DNA from: Pelomyxa schiedti
Taxonomy: Eukaryota > Protista > Evosea
Assembly (NCBI GenBank): GCA_020536535.1
Contig: JAHLWZ010000562.1
Coordinates: forward strand, 1-64,000
DNA length: 64,000 nucleotides
Reading direction: 5' to 3'
Below are positions 142-63,971 of the stretch, piece after piece (within the stretch, counting starts at the first letter, position 1; each line of letters starts with the position of its first letter). A program made the translations under genes and the position numbers. A model generated the notes under the pieces. It made no database searches. It was not told the DNA's origin and worked only from the letters and a program-made list of their open reading frames with translations.

Positions 142-3100
142 TCAAAAGCAGAAATTTATGCCTCTCCAACAGGAACTGGTGTTGGTTGTGTTGGGTGCTG
201 GTTTATTTGGAATTTCCGCCACAAGACGAAACAGACACTCTGATATTGTGGTTCCTTCAGCAGGAGGAACGTGTGCCAGAAACACACCCGTTTGGTTGTG
301 ATGGTGGCTCCAGGTCAAAGATATATGGTACATTGCAGTATGACACCAAAACAATGTGGAAGTTCCACACATGGCACAGGCCTGCCAACATATACAGTGG
401 TGGAACTGCTGAGGGTGTACTCCAGTGTTGCTGTCCAAACTGCGTTTTATTGGTTATAACCATAAACCAAAAGGAAAAAGAAACAGTTACATGCTCAAAG
501 TGGAAGTTGTTGAGAAGCCACTCATGTGCACGCCTCACGGCATACATCCCAAAGTTTCTGTTGGACCATGCACAGTGTGCTGCACCAAGGTACAGGGCCA
601 GCCCCTCTGTTCTCATCTGCAGTCCAAGTTGTGAGTACGGAACAAACAGTCAGATATAGTAGTTCCTTCAGCAGGAGGAACGTGTGCCAGAAACACACAC
701 CCGTTTGGTTGTGATGGTGGCTTCAAATCAAAGATATACAGTTTATTGCAGTATGACACCAAAACAATGCGGAAATTCCACACATGGCACAGACCAGTCA
801 ACATGTACAGTGGTGGAACCTCCTTTGCTGTGGTCCACTTCTGAAAATAAATTGTAAGATGGGCAAGAAATTGCAAACGTTGTACATGTGAAAAATCGAC
901 GTTCTTGTGAAGCCACTCCAATGCACGCCTAGCGGCAAAGAACCCAAAGTCTGGATTAGACCATGCGCACAGGGCAAATACTGTCCCAAGTGACAGAGCG
1001 GGGCTATTAAGTGACGGGGCTGGGCTCTCTGCTAAAATCTTCAATCCCAGTTGTGAGAGTCTTTTGTTCATATCCGGGGGAGGCTTGGGACACTGGCACA
1101 CAAGATCGGAGTTCGGGGTATCAAGGCTGTTGTCAATAGCTGACCGGATTTTTATGTGGCAAACCCGAACCTCTTCAAGGGCAATCTTAAATGCTGGCTG
1201 AATGTCATATTTAAAACGAAAACGAATGGAAACAAACCTTTTACTTTACTGAGAGGGTTTCCAGGGGTCGCTGTTTCAATCACAATAAGGGATCCACTAA
1301 CTGGAAATTTGGCAGCGGGCCAACAAGTCGGAGATTGAGGGGGCTCCCCAGTTGGCCACTCCCCAGGAGGGGAGATAATAGTGGGTTCCGAAGAGGCCTC
1401 GTCAATAACAGAAACGTTAACTTGGAAACGTCCCACATCAACTTCCCAAGTAAAAGTTCCAACCTTGTTTGGGTGTTAAGTCTACATTATAATCAAGAAA
1501 ATGTGTACTAGAAAGGGTCATTTCCTTCAGATATTTCTACTAAAGGCTGGTGGCACTTACTTCCAGTTGGAGAGTCATTCATAACAGAAACTGCAATGTG
1601 AAGATCTGGCTTCATTTACCATCGGTGAATAAAGTGCTGCCCTTCTTCACAGTGGAAAACAGGTGCGGACCGAACTTGCAGATGTCCCTTATCTCCAGGA
1701 AACAAGGGAATGATCACATCCGAATCCATGTTGCATTCCACATATAAACCTTATTGAGTCAAAGATGTGAGTGGAAGGAAAAAAGTGTATGCACACTCGT
1801 TGCCAACAAATTGAGGCACATCTCTTTGAACTGTGGAAATTTTGTAATGTATTCTTTCGTGGCTGCTACGAGGGCATCAACTTTCATAGCGTCATCAGGT
1901 GCACAGTCAGAAGAAAGTGGTGGATTGAGTCTGTAATAGGGACTCTGTACTGGCTTCGCCACCAGACTGCTGTGAACAGTTTCGGGGTTTGGACCTCCTG
2001 CAAAAAGGTTAAAAGCCAATCTTCCAAAACTACGGGTACCAAAAAAGGATTCCAAAGCACTGTGTTGCTGCAAGCCAGTGCCAAGGGAAACAAGAATTCC
2101 TTGTGAAACGTTCCAGATTGCTTTGCATTCCTCCAAAGAGACCTAAACTCGTCAGATATAAATTGAACCTGACGCAGTGTACATCAGAAGGATTAATAAT
2201 GGTGTCTGAACCGTCATAATAATAAGTGTTCTTCTCTTTTAGCCATAAATGAAAAGTACATTGCCAGTATAGTATTTGTACCAATTTCAACAGGGTCAAA
2301 GTAATAATATGTGGCCGACGTTGCCCCAGCTGCACCGCGAATTAATGCTGCTTCTTTATGCTCTTTGACAATTCCAATCTTCTCTGAAGGAATAAAGACA
2401 TGGTAACTGGTGAAAAGAACAGGCTGTCCCCCCTGCCTGGCAGCAACAAAGACCTATTTTACTTCAGGGTGGCATATGACACTATGTGGCAAATATCAAC
2501 CTTGCAAGCATCTGGATGCTTTTCATGCATATCATGCATTAAACTGTCACCAAACATGTTCTGTAATGCTGTGTCCAGTCCGGTCCGGTCATAAATGTTC
2601 TCAAAATACATGCGGACAAATTTCACTACTTGATAGGACTTGGTGTAAAATCTCGGGAAGTCCACAGTGAAAAACTTCACCAACTCCCCGATGTCAACGA
2701 TGTCGGAACCAAGAGCAAGGGCTGCGATTCCACCAGTTCCAACACCTCCCACCAAGTCAAACAGCTGTGACAGTTTCTGTGTGTAAGGGTCAGGGGAGAT
2801 GGGGAATGTGTGCTGGGAAAAATCACAGAAATTTCAAAACGAGGGAAAGAATAAATACAAACCGTGAGATTCATCTGTTGCATGATGTGTTTGTGAAGAC
2901 AGATCAAGCACCTCTCTGGTTTGACAAACTTGATATATTTGGACCCAATGACTTTCTTTGCCAGGTCATAACAGTATGAACTTGTAAAATTCACAAGGCT
3001 GGTGCATGGAAAGGATAGTCTTTATTTTGCTCGTGAAGGTATCATAAATGACTTCTTGGGCAGCAGGGTGGTCCAGCTGTACAACTGTTGAAAAAATGAA

Positions 3101-4936
3101 AAGAATAATAAAACACACATCATGAGCAGTGGTGATATTCATGTCACGAAGAGCAGGAATTAGATGCAAGGCAGCTCGCTCAATTAGAATAGACCGGAAG
3201 CTAAGTTTATTTCAGTTTTATAAGGGAATTTGATCTACTACGTTTTAAAGCTTGCTTTACGATCAGCACTGAAAGTGGGTGGATGAATTGACCCCCAGAT
3301 AACCTTAAAGAAGACATTGTTGGTTGTCATTTTGTTGGACAGCTTACCTTCCAAGAAATTGAAGGGGGAGGAGGAACCAATAGGTGAGACAAAAATTGGG
3401 AATAGAGATCACCGTTAACTTATTAGGACTTAAAAAAAATAGGTGAAGGGTGGCAGGGTTGTACATTTCGGCTTGCCTTCCTTCTTCAACTTGGTTGCAC
3501 AGGTGTTAGATAATGGCTCTAACATCAACGTGTTCTTGTATCTTATTGGTTTAGTGCAATGGATGGAAAATGGAGTGCACTCACACTAAAGTATTCAACA
3601 ATGACCTTATGTATAAACTTCAGGTACATTCTCTCTGTAAATATTTTGGAGACTCTCAAAGCAGACAACTTATTGGAAATGATGTTTGATATATATGACT
3701 GGCAGGAGGGTCAGTTAGATTCATTTGATCACTTTGGTTGTCACCTTTAATGGTTCAATGACATATGCATAAAACATTGGTTTCTCAAAGGCATTTGGCA
3801 ATCGAACAAATGAAAAAGAACTAAAGCATTGGCTGAGTCGGTTCCAGACGTCACATATGCCTGTTTCCCCTGTTCAGAAATTAGAAAATTAATTTTGTCT
3901 TTGAATGAAGTTCCTATTGCTGAGTATGTGCAAATAGAGGCTTTGAAGTCTTCAGTTGATTTTTTAATATCCCAGTCTGAGTATTTGAGACGAACATCTG
4001 GGCAAAAGTTCTGAATCAGGACAAGGTGTGGCTTGTGTCCCACAACATCTTGATCTACCATACAACTGGCAAATTGCAAAATACGCTCAGAATATTCCGA
4101 AATTCACATATTAACAAAAGACTGAGAACAGTTTCACTCCTCATTGTGCTACCCTGGTACATAGTCCGTTTTACTTGCCTGCCCATACATGAACCAACTT
4201 GTACAGTCAAGCCTTGGTATAAATGGAAACTTCAGAAGTGATGTACACAGCATGACACAACCTCGAAGGTGAAACAAAATTCAGAAAAGCCTTTGTCTTT
4301 GAGCCAGAGAGTAACATCATCAAATGTCCACAAGGACACAGGATTTATGTGCTCTTGTTGCTTCATAATGTTGTGTTAGAGGAAGAACATCATGTAATAG
4401 ATTTAGAGCACAACAGGTAGACGCGACATCAAATCTTCCTGCTGTTCCTCGCTCAGCTTTGTACTAAATCCAAGCCTGTTTAAACTGACAATAGTGACCA
4501 GATCTTCTTTGCTGTGAATGCCAGACTCGCTCAGCGCATGAAACGTGCTCTGCGACACGCTGCGCGACCTCACGAAATCCCTGAGCTCCATCCCAAGTTC
4601 TGTAAGCTTCCCGTCGTTCTCCTCCACCCAAGTTGGTGGGGCCGCCGTCGCGGTTGCGGTTGGCGTGGCTGGGGCAGGAATCGGCTTGGAAGAGGATAAG
4701 GCGGTCTTGGGGCTCGTGGGTGTATGCGAGGCAGACGTGGAAGAAGCCGTGGGCCCAGCGGAGGCCTTTAAGGCTATTTCGGCCAGCACTTGGTCTTGCA
4801 GCTGCTTGGTTAGCTGTGTGGTTGTGGGATCAGAAGGGGGAGGAGTAGAGGCACTGGTACTGCCCGCAGTGGTCCCGGGTCCGGCCTGTGGTGGTGCTGT
4901 CGAGCTGGTGTGCTGTGGCTGGTTGGCAGCTCCCAT
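142..4936 (-). CDS. Multi-exon protein ('gene A'): MG-start low-complexity N-terminus, SAM-like domain, catalytically degenerate patatin/iPLA2-like domain, two tandem C-terminal repeats; possibly pseudogenised
   Basis: ATG at 4936 (MGAANQPQH...). Exon near 4260-4345 reads PVSLWTFDDVTLWLKDKGFSEFCFTF (SAM-like). Exons 1760-2790 give patatin motifs in order: KLSQLFDLVGGVGTGGIAALALG, YDRTGLDTALQNMFGD, PVLFTSY, GAAGATSATYYYFDPVEI, YYDGSDTIINP, ILVSLGTG, YYRLNPPL. An in-frame TGA at 4104-4106 and a 2-nt frameshift near 283 suggest decay. The 3' end is uncertain. Confidence 0.55.
240..1000. repeat. Tandem direct duplication, period about 411 bp, encoding two copies of a ~110-aa domain of gene A
   Basis: GTTCCTTCAGCAGGAGGAACGTGTGCCAGAAACACAC... 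occurs at ~251 and ~662. Translated copies are PPLYMLAGLCHVWNFHIVLVSYCN and PPLYMLTGLCHVWNFRIVLVSYCN. Confidence 0.9.
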
Positions 4937-52251: not shown

Positions 52252-57044
<4,793 letters not shown>

Positions 57045-57165
57045 TGGGTGCTCTGTTCCTTCTCAGATGTAACCATAAGAACGTAAAAAAAAAACCAGCA
57101 CATAAGTCAACCCTATCGTTTTTTTTTTCGAAAATCCAAGTTTTATGTAACGTAATGACCCCTGT

Positions 57166-59272
57166 CTAATGGGTTTGCTTCTTCCTCTTGAGGCCGAGTA
57201 CTGCATCCAGGAAGGTGCATTTGTTCAGAGCACAACCGGCTGCATTAACTCCACAAATAAGAGCCCCAGGAACTCCACCGAATTCCACTTGTTCTCCAGC
57301 AACAAGTAGACCAGTACAGTGAGCCAATCTGCACTGGGGCTTGTGGTTCTTGGCCCAGTCGAAATTGAGCCTCATAGCATACGAAGCCCCGGGGTCTTTG
57401 CCGAGCCAGTGAAGGGTTGAGAGTGGGGTTCCGAATTCCACGTGTTTCAGGTGGTCTTTGCATTGAGGCCGGGCTGCGATTAGCCGTTCTATCATGGCAT
57501 CTATGTTGGGAGTGAGGGCTAATGGTAACCGGATTGTGAGGGGAAGCTACAGACCTCCCAGCTGCGATTTGAATTTGAGGTATTCTGCTGGCCGGCTCCT
57601 AAATTTAGTTTCTTCCCACTCGGCAAACCAACTGTAGGGAGTCATGACAATTCCAACCAGAGATGTGAAATTGCTGTTGCTTGCCAGTTTCGCCTCGGTG
57701 CAGTAAAAGCCAAGGGGCATGTAATCGAACAACTCGCGCACATCATCTGGCCTTTTCTCTGGCAAATTGAACTATCCAGAGTAAGTACATGTAAGCTCGA
57801 AGTGGTAACTTACCGGTGTGTCCAGTTTGGCTGTAAATACATCTTTATTTGGTAATACGCACATAGTGGGAGACAAGCCAAGATTGTTCCAATTATCATC
57901 CAGCCCCACAAAGCAACAAGAATATCCTATTCCATATTCTTCAGATTTAGGTACATACGACATAAACTTCCCAGCGCCCTACACAGGAGATATTCAGTAC
58001 TTATTGGAGGGTACCCCATACCATCGACGCTGTGTTGGCAAATCCAATAGTGCTAATGACACAGTCAGCAGAATACTGTTCACCAGATTTTGTTTCGACT
58101 CCGGTGCATTTAGACCCAGAGAACAGGAACTAAATTATAGCGGGTAAACCACTACTTACACAAGATTGTCTTGTTACCTTAGTTACTTTGCACGAGGTTT
58201 TGATTGCGCCTCCGCGATTGCGGATTCCTTCAAGCATAGCGCTGGCAATTGCTGGACCACCTCCTATTGGGTATGATCGAGTAAAAGTGCCCCAGGTCAT
58301 TGCCAGACCTGCATTGGCTGGCATTTCGCTTGGACAAGTAGCCAGGACGTTGCAGGAAGACAGCCCAAGAATATGCCTCAGCTGCACATTACTTGTCAAA
58401 TCTGTGCAATACTTGGATGTGTTACTATCTTTTTTTTGGTGGGAATAATACTTGTTTCCACGTAGTAGATGTTAAAGTTGAGCCAAATATCGCCCATTTG
58501 ATCTTCAACAAAGCCCTGAGGAGGAATGGAAATTCATTCAATGCAGAACGGAGAACAAGTTCACTTCCAGCAATGCTTCCGATACTACGTACGAGGGTAA
58601 AATGCTTTGTGATAGCTGCACTTTCAGTGGGAAATTTCTCTTTGAGGTATCTTTCACGTGCGTCTCCTTCAAGAGGATTGTGAATCTCATTTGTGACTTT
58701 GCCACTCGGATCCAGGGAGTAGAAAGAACCCAGGGTTGCGTTGTGCCATTCATATTGCACCTTATTTTCACAAAGAGTATGCATGATAAACGACTTCAAA
58801 TCATCACCTCTCAGCATAGAACCATCCAGGCAATGTAAGCCAACTTCGAAAGAATAAGGTCCCCTCTGTTCAAGCATTAGCCCACGAAACTCCACATTAT
58901 AATTAATGGTCAGCAAGTTAAATTTGGATTTTCTTTAAGAATGAGAACCCTGGGCAAACTAACCTTGAAAACATACATTGAACCACCAGGACTGTGATGT
59001 TGTTCGAGAATCAAAACTCTCTTCCCGGCTCTACTCAGTACTGATGCCGCAGCCAAACCGCTCACCCCTGACCCCACTACTATCACATCCCACAATTTGC
59101 TCTCGTTCGAAGTGGCGGTGGCACTACTTGAAGCCTTCGATTCCCGCGTGTTCGAGTGCTCCATGAACAGAGAGTGTGAGGAAACAAACCAGCGGGAAAA
59201 AAGCTTGGCGAGGAGTATCAGTGCCAGGCCTGATGAGCCCAACAGAAGCACCAGGTCCCACCAGGCTCCCAT
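57166..59272 (-). CDS. FAD-dependent oxidoreductase, phytoene desaturase (CrtI)/retinol saturase (RETSAT) family, N-terminal membrane anchor
   Basis: Hydrophobic N-terminus. Rossmann motif WDVIVVGSGVSGLAAASVLSRAGKRVLILEQHHSPGG, then FEVGLH, YPIGGGPAIA, EFGTPLS and GLLVAGEQVEFGGVPGA. Confidence 0.87.
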
Positions 59273-59655
59273 TTTTATTCAGGAATATCAGTAAAGAAAG
59301 GAGGGGGAAAAAAAACTCGAAGGGAGTTCCTCTGTTGCGAGTTCGGTTCTCTCCACCCACTGGAAAAGGTGAAGGTTTGTGTGGCTGGTACATCACCGCA
59401 CACAGCGAGATTTGATGGAGATGGCGCTGCCACCTGCCGCAAATAGGAAGATTGCAATGAAGTTTCACAACGATTCACTCCGTGATTGAGAAAGACTCGG
59501 CGATGACAAACGCCGACAAGACGAACCCTATTTTTAACGTCCTGGAAAGGATTTTCCCTCTTTTTAAGTACAGGAAAGAAAAAACTGTCAAAGTCGAAAA
59601 AACCAGAAAGGAAAACCTCTACAACAGAAAGAAGGACAAACGGTTTGACACAGCC

Positions 59656-61874
59656 ATGAGTGGCTCAACATCATCTGACGAAGAGGTGCATGCAACTCCT
59701 ATTGTAATTGTAGCTGGCCCAGACCTTGACACTGGTTGGTACTCAACGGGTTAATAAAGTGATAAGTAATAACTGTACAGTGGATGGAGAAGGGGATTTA
59801 ACCTAAATATCTCAGATTTCACTTCAAAGTCTCATTTACTTGTTGATGGGAAGGAAGCCAGCATAGCCTTTCTGCGGGAATACTTTAGGAATGGAAAGGT
59901 TACACATGAGTCTTACATTTCTCGATTTCTTAAACACACTAGGATGCAGCGAGGGCCGATAAAACTGTCAGAAATAAGCAAGGGTACTTGTCACTCTCTG
60001 GAGTATACTTGAAACAGTTCCTCCATAAGAACAGAGGCGAAGCTGGAGCTGCAACTGTTATACACTATTTCAATGACTCTACAGCTGCGGCCTATGACAG
60101 GGCAGTTGCAAGTGCTTCAGTGCTGCTAATCAGCACCACTCTGATGCCCACTTGGAGCTTTGTAGAATCCCTGGCTGATAGGGCCAAGAGAATCAATCCA
60201 ACTATCACGGTTATCGCTGGTGGTGTAAGTGTGTACAAGTAAGTAACTGCATCCTATTTCTTTATCGGTATTAAGTCTCCTTCAGGATAGCCAAAGCAAG
60301 GAAGATGCTAGACGCAGGCCTTTTTGAGGCAACTCCCAAGCTGAGGGAGTTCTGGAAGTTTCTTATGAAACCGTACCAATCCAAAATTGACTTTGCAATT
60401 GCAAGTGTAGCCGGGGAACAGATTTTGTTGACTCTCCTGGACTGTTTGGAGCAGGTATGGATCTGTTTGTACTGGAAGAGAGTAGTCTAACTTCTTTGTT
60501 AAGGGATCTGATGCCTGGAAAACCATGCCAAATGTGATATGGTACGATCCCTCGGTTGGGGATTTTCATATGAATGAGCGTGAGTCCTTCCACATTATTA
60601 ATAACCTTAGTAATGATTCAATTCCGTTAGTTGTGGAAGAAAAGTCTTCAGACTGTGAGGTTGATTGGTCGCGAGAAAAGTGCCCTGAAGGGAGTATTTA
60701 CCCAGTGCAGGCTGGGCAAGGATGCCCATACAAGTAAACTTTTCTGTCGTGACGCTGGGTCTAAATAAAGTTTGAAGGTGTGGCTTTTGCGATTTTGTTG
60801 CTCTAGAACCTGTTGTGTATCGATGCAACACCAATGCTGTCATGAATACTGTGAGAAGCATCCCCTTATACAAAGGGCATAGACGAGTAAGTTTGTCTTT
60901 TTCTTTCCAATCTAAATCATTTAAGGTGTGGTTTACAAATGATAACTTGTTGGTCACACGCTCAGTGGCAGTGAATTTCCTCACAGAACTCATTCGACAG
61001 GATTTGCACTGTCGGTGGTACTCCTTCTTGAGGTTAGATAGACAGGACATGTTAATCACTACCAACATATCAATTTCAGACTTGACGCTGTTGCCGATGC
61101 AGAACTGGCCGATTTAATTGCACAGTCGGGTTGTGAAAGGGCCAATTTTGGATTGGAGAGTGGAGATCAAACGATCCTTGACAATATGGAAAAACATTGC
61201 CGTGTTGAGGTTGTTTTCCATGCCAAATATGTTGTTACTTAATCTCAGCAGGACATTCCACGTGGTATCAATTTCCTCCTGGAACGGAACATAATTGTGC
61301 GTGTATCCGTAATTGTGGGATATCCAGGAGAGACAAAGGAAACGATCATGAAGACAGTGAAACTTGTCAATAGTATCCAAGATACCGGAGTGTTTGAGGT
61401 GAAGGTACGAATTTCCAAGAATGACAAAAAAAAAAGTCGTTTTCGCTCATGCTTTCTTTCCAAAAGGTGTTCCCGCTTGGAATTTTCCCAATGGCGCCGA
61501 TTTCGACTCGGCAACAGAGGCAAAGATGGGGACTGCAAGGAATAGGACTTGTGTGGAAACATGACACAATGACATCAACTGAGGCGGCATTCTACGCCGA
61601 CAAGTTCGACGACTGGATCAGGCCCACAATTGGCTCCGTCTACTGCGCCGAGAACTGCTTCTTCTTCGACGTTGCAGACCCAGCAGCCAGAAGGACGGTG
61701 ATCGTACTCCGAAACATTGTACACTCCGATCATTTTTCCCCCTGCAGTTTGATGGTTTCTTTAACCAAAATGAAACAGCTGAGGAGGCGCTCAAGGGGAA
61801 ACAGAGAGGACGGGGATCCAAGGACAGACGAGCAAATCTGGGCAGCCCTTGAGGAAGTTTTGACTGCGAACTAA
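59656..61874 (+). CDS. Cobalamin (B12)-binding class B radical SAM enzyme, putative methyltransferase (PhpK-family-like pattern)
   Basis: B12-domain pattern LSLSGVYLKQFLHK...LLISTTL...NPTITVIAGG. Spliced CxxxCxxC motif GQGCPY|KCGFCDF. Also VWFTNDNL, WYSFLR, GLESGDQTILDNM, VIVGYPGET and GLVWKHDTM. Several GT-AG introns. Confidence 0.87.
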
Positions 61875-61943
61875 AGTCTCTCCCTCTTTGTTTTAAATAG
61901 AAATTTTTGGAGATTTGCCTTTGGGTTTTTGTTCTGTTTCCTT

Positions 61944-63971
61944 CTACACATTTTGTTCAGAAGTACTGCTTGGAAGATAATCCTTGGCCAATTGTAAGAG
62001 GTGACCACCAAGTTTTTGTGGTTGCTTGTGTTCTGCAACAAGGGAATAGAACGCATTTGTGAATGACTCCTCCAAAGCTGCCCAGAAGCCACATTCAGAA
62101 AGTGAGCTGGAACCATCAAAATTTTCCTATTGTTAGTGGGGTTCCGCGGTTAGTATTACTGAGAATTTGACTTGAGTCATGCACATACAAATGGGAGGTT
62201 AACGTCGAATGACAGAGGAATAGACTCAGAGTGTTTGTTTACGTATGGCACAATCACCCTTGCCATTGTGTTGGCGATGATGGACAAGTTCGGGTCTGGG
62301 ATACTGGTTTCCTGCAGTCTCACGTGCTTGAAATTGGTATCAAAATGCATCAGTACTTGGGGCTTCTCTTTTCTCTTGAGTTTCTGTGCAAGTGTTCTAT
62401 TAGGAAAAGGAGGACGGGTGTAAACAGATATTACCAGTTTGTCATATCTGCTTGGGTGCACTGTGCTGATATTAGCACAAAGGTCAACAGTACCGTGACA
62501 GATCCAAGCTATAGGTGGGGCTGCCCTATAGCTGAGAAGCTGTGCTTTCAAGTTTGTCATGTGGAGGTCGGTCTGGGGGATTCACTTGTAACTAAAAAGG
62601 TGTTGTGTGCTTAATTATTGCGTACCTCTTTCTTGTGTAATTGCTTGCTTGGCCTTCGGAACAGTGTAAACAAACTACCTGTAAATGCAGTTGGTGATAC
62701 TAGTGTGATTGACCGTGTAGGTTACCGTCAAACTGGCCAGCAGCCGACCTGCACATGAGCAAGTCCAACACAAGCCAATTTTGACGGAGAATATCACACT
62801 GAATTTCAAACAATCCAACAGAGAATGGCCTAAACATATCAGTGATAGTTGGCACAACCAAGAACAAACCTCGTATATGGAGCTGGTAAGTAAAGAGTGA
62901 CTGACACATCCCGCATGCGGAATTGGGAGAGATTAAACCCTTTTCTGCTTTTTCTAATCTCAGTTGTTTCGAGTTCCTCCTCTCTGCGCCTGTCGATTAT
63001 GCCTTTCACCCCTGTGCAATCGATTTCGGAAATAAGACCTTTCCCTAAAAAGTTTGGGTTGGCACCACAGGCGCATAAATGGGGATGCGAACCTACAATC
63101 CAGTGCAGAAGGGACAACTTCACATCAACCGATTCTGCAGATAAATCAAAGGATGCATCTGGTTTTGAGCTGTCATTTCGAAGAGCGCGCACATCACTCA
63201 CTCTGATCCGCCTCTTCTTCCATAACACAACCACGCTATCGGAAAACTGCAGCTGCGAATTTGTCTGAAATTCGAGATGTTTTCTCACGTGCCTCACAAC
63301 AAAACCTTTTGCCAAGTAGTGTCAGACTTGGGAAAGGGTAATGAAGCCATACCTTGAAACCGAAGAGCATTTGAAGCACTGAGCACAATTGAGGCAGCAG
63401 TAGTTGTAGCGACGAGTGCAAGAACGCCAGAAGCCACTCCAATCCACCATCTCAACAGCGGCCTAGCTAAATAGGTTAAAGCCTGTTACATAAGAATACT
63501 TAAAGTGCACATAGATTCAGTTGAAGAGCCAACGAAATTTAAATTGTAACAACACTCTCAAATCAAAGTCAATTTCATTCACATTCACATTCACACAACA
63601 AAATACCAAGTTTTGCGTCTTCCACGCGGGGTCGCCTCCGTGTCATTGTCCTTCTTGGCGTGTTTGTTTTTGTTCTTTACATCCCGCCCTTTCGCAATTT
63701 GGGTAGCTTCCGTGGCCAACGGCGAATCGTCGCACGCTGCTGTTGATTTAAATTGCGCGCCGGCAGCCGAATCGCCGTTGGCAGCGCTGGCTCCATCACC
63801 ACCACTGGGACCAATGACGTCATTGCACAGCAACTGCTCGGCCCACGACGTTGCGGAGTGCATGTTGGATGCAACTGCGCTCCTTCGTGAAAAAGACGGT
63901 GCACTGGCCGAGGCCAAGAGCACCCTTCGTGAAGTGAACGAGGGTGAGGACGAACGCGAGCGTGCTCCCAT
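61944..63971 (-). CDS. MDM31: Mdm31/Mdm32-like mitochondrial inner-membrane protein
   Basis: R/S-rich presequence-like N-terminus. TM segment LALVATTTAASIVLSASNALRFQ. Motifs GKGLISEIDCTGVKGIIDRR, RPFSVGLFEIQCDILRQNWLVLDLL, PIAWICHGTVDL, NTMARVIVPYVN and ENFDGSSSL follow the Mdm31 order. The start could lie beyond the window edge. Confidence 0.72.

Follow-up and report, generated by a model that had tools for sequence, protein, structure and literature searches.

A spliced radical S-adenosylmethionine gene of probable bacterial ancestry, expanded in the pelomyxid amoeba Pelomyxa schiedti

How a class B radical S-adenosylmethionine (SAM) enzyme, of a type generally treated as prokaryotic, might come to be encoded by an intron-rich gene of an amoeba, and what it would do there, are the questions raised by one locus of Pelomyxa schiedti. 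The locus occupies positions 59656-61874 of the window, by which we mean the whole stretch of 64,000 nucleotides that was analysed (contig JAHLWZ010000562.1, positions 1 to 64,000 of the forward strand). Our reading, to which we assign a probability of roughly 0.6, is that the gene encodes a cytosolic class B-type radical SAM enzyme that is derived from bacteria, has expanded in the pelomyxids, and probably acts on an isoprenoid or another lipid. What is new is the setting, namely a eukaryotic, intron-rich and expanded pelomyxid family of an uncharacterised subfamily; the enzyme class itself is well known. In a limited collection, literature searches turned up no eukaryotic radical SAM enzyme of the cobalamin type, no paper on this family in Archamoebae or other eukaryotes, and no discussion of any of the paralogues described below. 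Neither these paralogues nor cobalamin is mentioned in the two papers on Pelomyxa or in the paper on the Mastigamoeba genome.

The gene runs on the forward strand from an ATG at 59656 to a TAA stop codon at 61872-61874, and joining its 12 exons across 11 introns gives an intact frame of 550 codons (550 amino acids), the product of which is referred to here as the window protein. The three forward frames of 59600-61900 consist of open segments with frame changes at short GT...AG intervals. The splice model drawn from these reading frames contained 10 introns, and the 11th (61719-61778) came from RNA contigs. All 11 introns are of the GT-AG type and measure 39-81 nt. The DNA of the gene is present in one DNA run and, from the same study, in three RNA libraries of single cells that carry the label “protist metagenome”; the contigs of these runs were compared over 59400-62100. 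Contigs of RNA runs X1 and X2 together show every one of the 11 exon junctions, and the DNA run shows the unspliced form of the gene. The gene is therefore transcribed and spliced, and the original prediction, which had been made from the sequence alone and had placed an intron-containing gene here, was exact in its coordinates. For comparison, the published intron density of P. schiedti is 7.43 per gene (PMC8887013).

One intron interrupts the catalytic motif itself. The radical SAM [4Fe-4S] motif, C266-x3-C270-x2-C273, extends over 60723-60790 (+) and is broken by intron 6 (60734-60777; 44 nt, GT-AG, phase 2), which cuts the codon of K269. Exon 6 (60631-60733, residues 235-269) terminates in GQGCPYK with the first cysteine of the motif, and exon 7 (60778-60886, residues 269-305) follows, with the junction seen in RNA, as had been predicted. 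DNA run X4 contains, over 59800-61600, a second haplotype or strain that is divergent by a few per cent and has small indels only in introns. The differences listed between this haplotype and the window include 19 synonymous and 4 non-synonymous ones over the 1653 coding bases, and 17 over the 566 intronic bases, and the 19:4 ratio indicates that the gene is under purifying selection.

The surroundings of the gene are eukaryotic as well. An actin exon (53176-53811, +; Pfam 158 bits) is located some 6 kb upstream of it, and the neighbourhood also contains an MDM31/32-like open reading frame (ORF) and a Ras fragment. Because its introns are removed in RNA, its neighbours are eukaryotic, and its product falls in a eukaryotic clade nested among prokaryotes (see below), the gene is a eukaryotic nuclear gene and not contamination, in agreement with what had been proposed.

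The window gene is one of a family. A library of 1.84 billion proteins queried with the last exon returned 7 matches with significance below 1e-9, among them full-length relatives of 548-556 amino acids. Exons, or the paralogue P0001 as a stand-in, served as queries in the library searches, and whole-protein comparisons with the window protein were made by script alignments of the spliced sequence. The word-based homologue searches were patchy, sometimes leaving members of the query alignment unreturned, and the absence of the window protein itself, or of other taxa such as Mastigamoeba and Entamoeba, from their results is therefore uninformative. Six GenBank entries from the same assembly (GCA_020536535.1) are named “radical SAM protein [Pelomyxa schiedti]”, and over nearly its full length the window protein is 42% identical to P0001 (KAH3761466.1), 44% to P0005, 40% to P0031, 40% to P0006, 39% to P0060 and 42% to P0059. 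The window gene is thus distinct from all six (the best being 44% identical), giving at least seven paralogues in P. schiedti. A comparison of the window with the P. schiedti contigs L091 and L092 revealed no repeats in common, which has no bearing on the source of the window. These paralogues resemble the window protein in length and domain order, and the conserved residues are the same in the four that were aligned (P0001, P0005, P0006, and P0031). Near-full-length identity is 45% to an environmental eukaryotic protein, P0008, and about 31-34% to prokaryote-style proteins. P0008 is the mRNA form (L004; RNA run ERR13493907) of an intron-rich gene at 2468-4674 of environmental contig L089 (European Nucleotide Archive assembly ERZ21831265), which has a GC content of 38% and introns of about 35-45 nt. 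Two further relatives come from Mastigella eilhardi, as transcripts in EukProt.

The introns record the age of the family. Introns of P0001 and P0005 were mapped on their genomic loci and then placed on an alignment with the window protein. The three genes have 12 intron positions in total, with the same phases, and each gene lacks exactly one of them, so that each mapped paralogue shares 10 of the 11 intron positions and phases of the window gene. Missing from the window gene is the intron at alignment column 460, whereas it retains the introns at columns 278 and 387, either of which has been lost by one of the two mapped paralogues. The intron inside CxxxCxxC has the same position and phase in all three genes, and in the environmental gene (L089/L004) the residue numbers of the junctions match as well, that within CxxxCxxC among them. 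Since paralogues with no more than about 40% identity today still share positions and phases, the introns predate the duplications.

The phylogenetic analyses comprised a tree of 61 rows (LG+C20 with posterior mean site frequencies, PMSF) and a tree of 40 rows with ultrafast bootstraps, with support given as ultrafast bootstrap/Shimodaira-Hasegawa-like approximate likelihood ratio test (UFBoot/SH-aLRT). Both trees agree in placing the Pelomyxa-type sequences in one clade (100/100) with Mastigella as its sister (100/98). This amoebal clade is nested within a bacterial clade (93/97), the nearest members of which are from metagenome-assembled genomes (MAGs) of Lentisphaerota, Verrucomicrobiota, Kiritimatiellota, Planctomycetota, and Elusimicrobiota, the first four of these phyla dominating the clade. 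The deeper branches are all bacterial, as are the nearest ESM Atlas clusters. In both trees the sister clade is formed by MAG proteins of the Planctomycetota-Verrucomicrobiota-Chlamydiota (PVC) superphylum (P0010, P0009, P0030, and L009-L018), which have the same architecture and conserved residues as the amoebal proteins and an identity of about 32-34% over the full length; their genes, unlike the amoebal ones, are intron-free. The simplest account is that the gene passed once from an anaerobic bacterium into an ancestor common to Pelomyxa and Mastigella, then gained introns, and later expanded. Because at least seven paralogues share intron positions and Mastigella has relatives, the transfer would have preceded the Pelomyxa-Mastigella split, with vertical inheritance since. 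The original prediction of lateral acquisition thus holds insofar as the amoebal clade nests among bacteria, whereas a single recent acquisition does not fit the shared introns of at least seven paralogues or the Mastigella relatives.

The residues expected of such an enzyme are conserved. The cluster motif reads C266-P-Y-K-C270-G-F-C273, and its three cysteines are invariant in 36 of 36 family members. All of the other motifs that had been picked out from the sequence are present in the product, as Y76-L-K-Q-F-L81, I117-S-T-T-L121, I145-A-G-G148, and G460-I-G-L-V-W465-K-H467-D-T469-M470, and most are near-invariant in the 36-sequence alignment. Of the 42 highly conserved columns in this alignment (at least 33 of 36 identical), the window protein keeps 41, including S118, T120, G147-G148, the three cluster cysteines, G365-x-E-S, G407-x-P-G-E, and G460...W465-x-H467-x-T-M470. 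The SxL(26)GG part of the classical cobalamin fingerprint corresponds to ISTTL (S118, T120) and IAGG (G147, G148), near-invariant across the family. The DxHxxG part is absent from the window protein; class B radical SAM enzymes are usually without it.

These motifs are distributed over the exons in the order of a class B enzyme. Exon 3 (59943-60238, residues 55-152) would form the core of a Rossmann-type B12-binding-like domain and contains YLKQFL, ISTTL, and IAGG. Exons 9 (61080-61209, residues 341-384) and 10 (61252-61404, residues 385-435) encode the predicted radical SAM core, with conserved G365-x-E367-S368 and G407-x-P-G-E411, respectively, and exon 11 (61467-61718, residues 436-519) encodes a family-specific C-terminal domain with G460-x-G-x-x-W465-x-H467-x-T-M470. 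The radical SAM profile PF04055 scores 17 bits on each of exons 9 and 10, under its cut-off because the exons are fragments, and full-length relatives carry precomputed PF04055 matches. TIGR04479 (the PhpK family) is the top NCBIfam model on four exons, at colinear profile positions 70-147, 329-366, 371-410, and 424-465 of 504; exons 9, 10, and 11 score 33, 32, and 24.5 bits, and the exon sum is about 105 bits. A search of solved structures with single exons gave weak matches only. Since the Pfam and NCBIfam exon matches are colinear and full-length relatives align with E-values down to 1e-160, a chance match is excluded. The layout, as predicted from these motifs and profiles, is that of the class B type: an N-terminal Rossmann-type B12 domain, then a radical SAM barrel, then the family-specific C-terminal domain. 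The product may bind cobalamin and transfer methyl groups.

The predicted fold is consistent with this layout. An AlphaFold2 model of the paralogue P0001 (mean predicted local distance difference test score 89.2, predicted template modelling score 0.88) consists of a beta-alpha-beta domain (residues ~97-228), a barrel, and a helical C-terminal domain. At full length, its best matches among solved structures are TsrM (E-values down to 1.5e-18), MgmA, CysS, AprD4, OxsB, and TokK, and among Swiss-Prot models BchE, TsrM, BchR/BchQ, Fom3, ThnK, TokK, HpnR, HpnP, and OxsB. TsrM (PDB 6WTE/6WTF), TokK, CysS, OxsB, and MgmA resemble the P0001 model over all three domains (Foldseek E-values 1e-18 to 1e-14, template modelling scores of about 0.5-0.56) but differ in sequence (13-16% identity) and in substrates. 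The original prediction, that this is a cobalamin-type (class B) radical SAM enzyme, had named the lack of a cobalamin-binding fold as evidence that would count against it, and the fold of P0001 matches cobalamin-dependent radical SAM enzymes. TsrM itself is not known to use a 5'-deoxyadenosyl radical, and therefore the fold alone leaves the chemistry unfixed.

Among named families, PhpK is the closest. TIGR04479 is the top NCBIfam match on all full-length relatives scanned, with 194-204 bits for four amoebal relatives and 221-280 bits for the bacterial sisters, where the cut-off is 600; the alignment spans profile positions ~30-470 of 504, including the C-terminal block. The amoebal scores are about a third of the cut-off, and the amoebal sequences form a clade apart from proteins that NCBI or JGI (the Joint Genome Institute) names PhpK family: the tree, which included such proteins and no experimentally characterised PhpK, places three of them (P0071, P0077, and P0083) as well as P0012 (431 bits) across the midpoint root from the clade of the window protein. 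Judged from profile scores and tree position, the window protein is related to PhpK but belongs to a distinct, uncharacterised subfamily. The PhpK-like character proposed earlier is thus borne out by the top-ranking model, whereas membership is not, at about 200 bits against 600 and in a different clade. Other named families are more remote. HpnP and HpnR are class B enzymes that methylate cyclic triterpenoids; the HpnR model (TIGR04367) scores 26-42 bits on bacterial relatives against a cut-off of 650 and has no match on amoebal relatives at E<=1e-5. HpnP and HpnR share the enzyme class and fold and would be functional analogues of the window protein if the isoprenoid reading is right, but are not orthologues. 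The BchE model (TIGR02026) scores 42-85 bits against a cut-off of 481, and the “BchE” labels that JGI gives to relatives are automatic.

Evidence on the substrate comes from the gene neighbourhoods of the bacterial sister clade, which comprise 12 distinct loci (L003 and L014 are one and the same contig, and L093 is a longer contig with the L009 locus). In 6 of the 12 loci a gene near the family gene encodes DUF116 fused to a short-chain polyprenyl-diphosphate synthase: it adjoins in five (L009/L093, L010, L011, L015, and L017), being adjacent and co-directional in L011, L015, and L017, and lies about 10 kb off in L001. A 4Fe-4S ferredoxin of 264 amino acids stands alongside the DUF116-polyprenyl synthase in three loci. 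Prenyltransferase alpha-alpha-toroid protein genes occur in three sister-clade loci, and a squalene-hopene cyclase gene lies next to the sister-clade gene in L001. In the Elusimicrobia locus L018, two family members flank a UbiA prenyltransferase, and a methyltransferase there has geranyl-diphosphate 2-C-methyltransferase as its best NCBIfam model (129 bits against a cut-off of 400). No phosphonate biosynthesis gene was seen among those neighbours in the sister-clade loci that carry an annotation (some carry none), nor in any other annotated neighbourhood, and the eukaryotic genes are unclustered. More distant clades are found in polyketide-like or nonribosomal peptide synthetase-like clusters. 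Since the bacterial sister genes adjoin prenyl-diphosphate synthase and terpene-cyclase-like genes, an isoprenoid or other lipid substrate is favoured over P-methylation, with modest support, and the reaction may be methylation or another radical modification. The phosphonate-type (P) chemistry that had been envisaged for the gene, beside methylation of carbon, finds no footing among the annotated genes of these neighbourhoods, which point to isoprenoids instead.

Under the reading that we favour, an anaerobic bacterium would have been the source from which the common ancestor of Pelomyxa and Mastigella received the gene, whose closest relatives among those sampled are from PVC-superphylum MAGs; about 12 spliceosomal introns would then have entered it, and duplication in Pelomyxa would have raised the number of paralogues to seven or more. 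In the enzyme, reductive cleavage of SAM at the [4Fe-4S] cluster would yield a 5'-deoxyadenosyl radical, which would remove hydrogen from an unactivated carbon, after which methylcobalamin would supply a methyl group. The substrate class would most likely be an isoprenoid or another lipid, and the cobalamin would have to come from prey or from the prokaryotic endosymbionts of the amoeba.

Several observations weigh against this reading. The donor lineage is represented by MAGs only. The structure was predicted for P0001, which is 42% identical to the window protein, with a family alignment, and not for the window protein itself. The B12-binding profile PF02310 scores 22.4 bits on exon 3 (E-value 1e-4), below its cut-off of 32.1, and only 12-26% of the members carry it in the three nearest clusters of the ESM Atlas. 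AprD4, the solved relative ranked first by sequence profile (107 bits), has a B12-like domain yet is known to work without cobalamin. The link to isoprenoids comes from bacterial genes whose identity to the window protein is only about 32%, and 5 of the 12 loci (L003, L012, L013, L016, and L094) have no prenyl or terpene neighbours. The P. schiedti paralogues are scattered, with unrelated eukaryotic genes as neighbours. Some of these points would equally suit a protein with the class B fold that is no methylase, being either independent of cobalamin like AprD4 or engaged in cyclisation, ring contraction, dehydration, or C-C coupling. BchE, HpnJ, OxsB, and the glycerol dialkyl glycerol tetraether (GDGT) ring synthases all use the radical for reactions other than methylation, and, besides the weak B12-domain signal, AprD4 ranks high by fold as well as first by sequence profile, and several of the leading fold matches are to BchE models. 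On the other hand, SxL...GG is near-invariant across the family, most of the characterised class B fold matches are methylases, and PhpK, the closest named family, is a methylcobalamin-dependent methylase, so we consider this alternative possible but doubtful.

A true P-methyltransferase of the PhpK/BcpD type, acting on a phosphinate or phosphonate, would imply that the amoeba makes C-P-C compounds or methylated phosphonolipids. TIGR04479 is the best NCBIfam model for four colinear exons and for every full-length relative, the conserved C-terminal W-x-H-x-T-M block aligns with it, and JGI names some relatives “p-methyltransferase”. These names are automatic, however, and the scores (194-204 bits for amoebal and 221-280 for bacterial sequences) fall far short of 600, the PhpK-named proteins and P0012 are placed elsewhere in the tree, and the sister-clade neighbours are prenyl synthase, ferredoxin, and terpene-cyclase-like genes with no phosphonate gene among the annotated ones; we regard this assignment as improbable. 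An artefact, whether bacterial or endosymbiont DNA that was misassembled or a pseudogene decaying after transfer, might come to mind for a host with many prokaryotic endosymbionts and for data from single-cell amplification (PMC10579272, PMC8887013). It is refuted by the eleven spliceosomal introns, all removed in RNA, and is further contradicted by intron positions common to paralogues on other contigs, by the actin gene on the same contig, by the intact frame with conserved catalytic residues, and by the constraint that the 19:4 ratio between haplotypes indicates, which together make it scarcely credible.

If the bacterial-derived class B reading is right, the gene raises the question of how a host living together with methanogens and syntrophic bacteria obtains its B12. 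That the gene was kept, filled with introns, and multiplied at least sevenfold, with conserved catalytic residues and under purifying selection, argues for an important oxygen-free reaction. It is tempting to go further and suppose that pelomyxids possess at least seven cobalamin-dependent radical SAM methylases for the O2-free modification of isoprenoid or membrane lipids, with cobalamin provided by their methanogenic and bacterial endosymbionts. We consider this extended scenario unlikely as a whole. If true, a class B radical SAM family would for the first time be shown to function in a eukaryote, the host would depend directly on symbiont B12 for its metabolism, and methylated terpenoid biomarkers, usually credited to bacteria, might also have a eukaryotic source.

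The bacterial loci are of interest in their own right. L009, L093, L015, and L017 contain a recurring three-gene module of a B12-domain radical SAM protein, the DUF116-polyprenyl synthase, and the 264-amino-acid 4Fe-4S ferredoxin, which is unstudied and of interest to terpenoid biochemistry. In L018 (2700-15700 of MGTT01000029.1) there are also two SPASM-type radical SAM genes, a FabD-like acyltransferase gene, and an ABC exporter gene, and the cluster looks like a pathway for a modified terpenoid. A menaquinone pathway was considered for this cluster and rejected, as the extra radical SAM genes are SPASM/NirJ-like and not MqnC or MqnE.

The remaining parts of the gene model are as follows. 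Exon 1 (59656-59734) encodes residues 1-26, with the N-terminus MSGSTSS...IVIVAG, to which the N-termini of P0001 and P0005 align; inspection by eye revealed no obvious targeting peptide in it. Exons 2 (59816-59898, residues 27-54), 4 (60286-60454, residues 153-209), 5 (60504-60579, residues 210-234), and 8 (60926-61032, residues 306-340) are, like exon 7, supported by the splice model and RNA. Exon 12 (61779-61874) encodes residues 520-550 and includes the stop codon. The preceding intron 11 (60 nt) is in frame and free of stop codons; its spliced form alone was seen, in run X1 only, and its retention would add 20 amino acids to give 570. RNA run X3 contains an unspliced, divergent contig spanning introns 5 and 6.

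Upstream, the 383-bp intergenic region at 59273-59655 presumably holds the promoter and 5' untranslated region of the radical SAM gene. It separates this gene from a multi-exon gene at 56900-59272 (-), arranged head to head with it, for an oxidoreductase that binds flavin and nicotinamide adenine dinucleotides (FAD/NAD). The oxidoreductase has a hydrophobic N-terminus and only generic Rossmann/FAD/NAD matches in Pfam, and by eye it resembles RetSat or phytoene desaturase. It was considered as a co-transferred partner and dropped, given that none of the fetched bacterial loci has a homologue and the Pfam matches are generic only. Downstream, the ORF at 62839-63312 (-) contains an MDM31/MDM32 domain (E-value 1.5e-11), that of a mitochondrial inner-membrane protein, which is unexpected for an anaerobe with reduced mitochondrion-related organelles.

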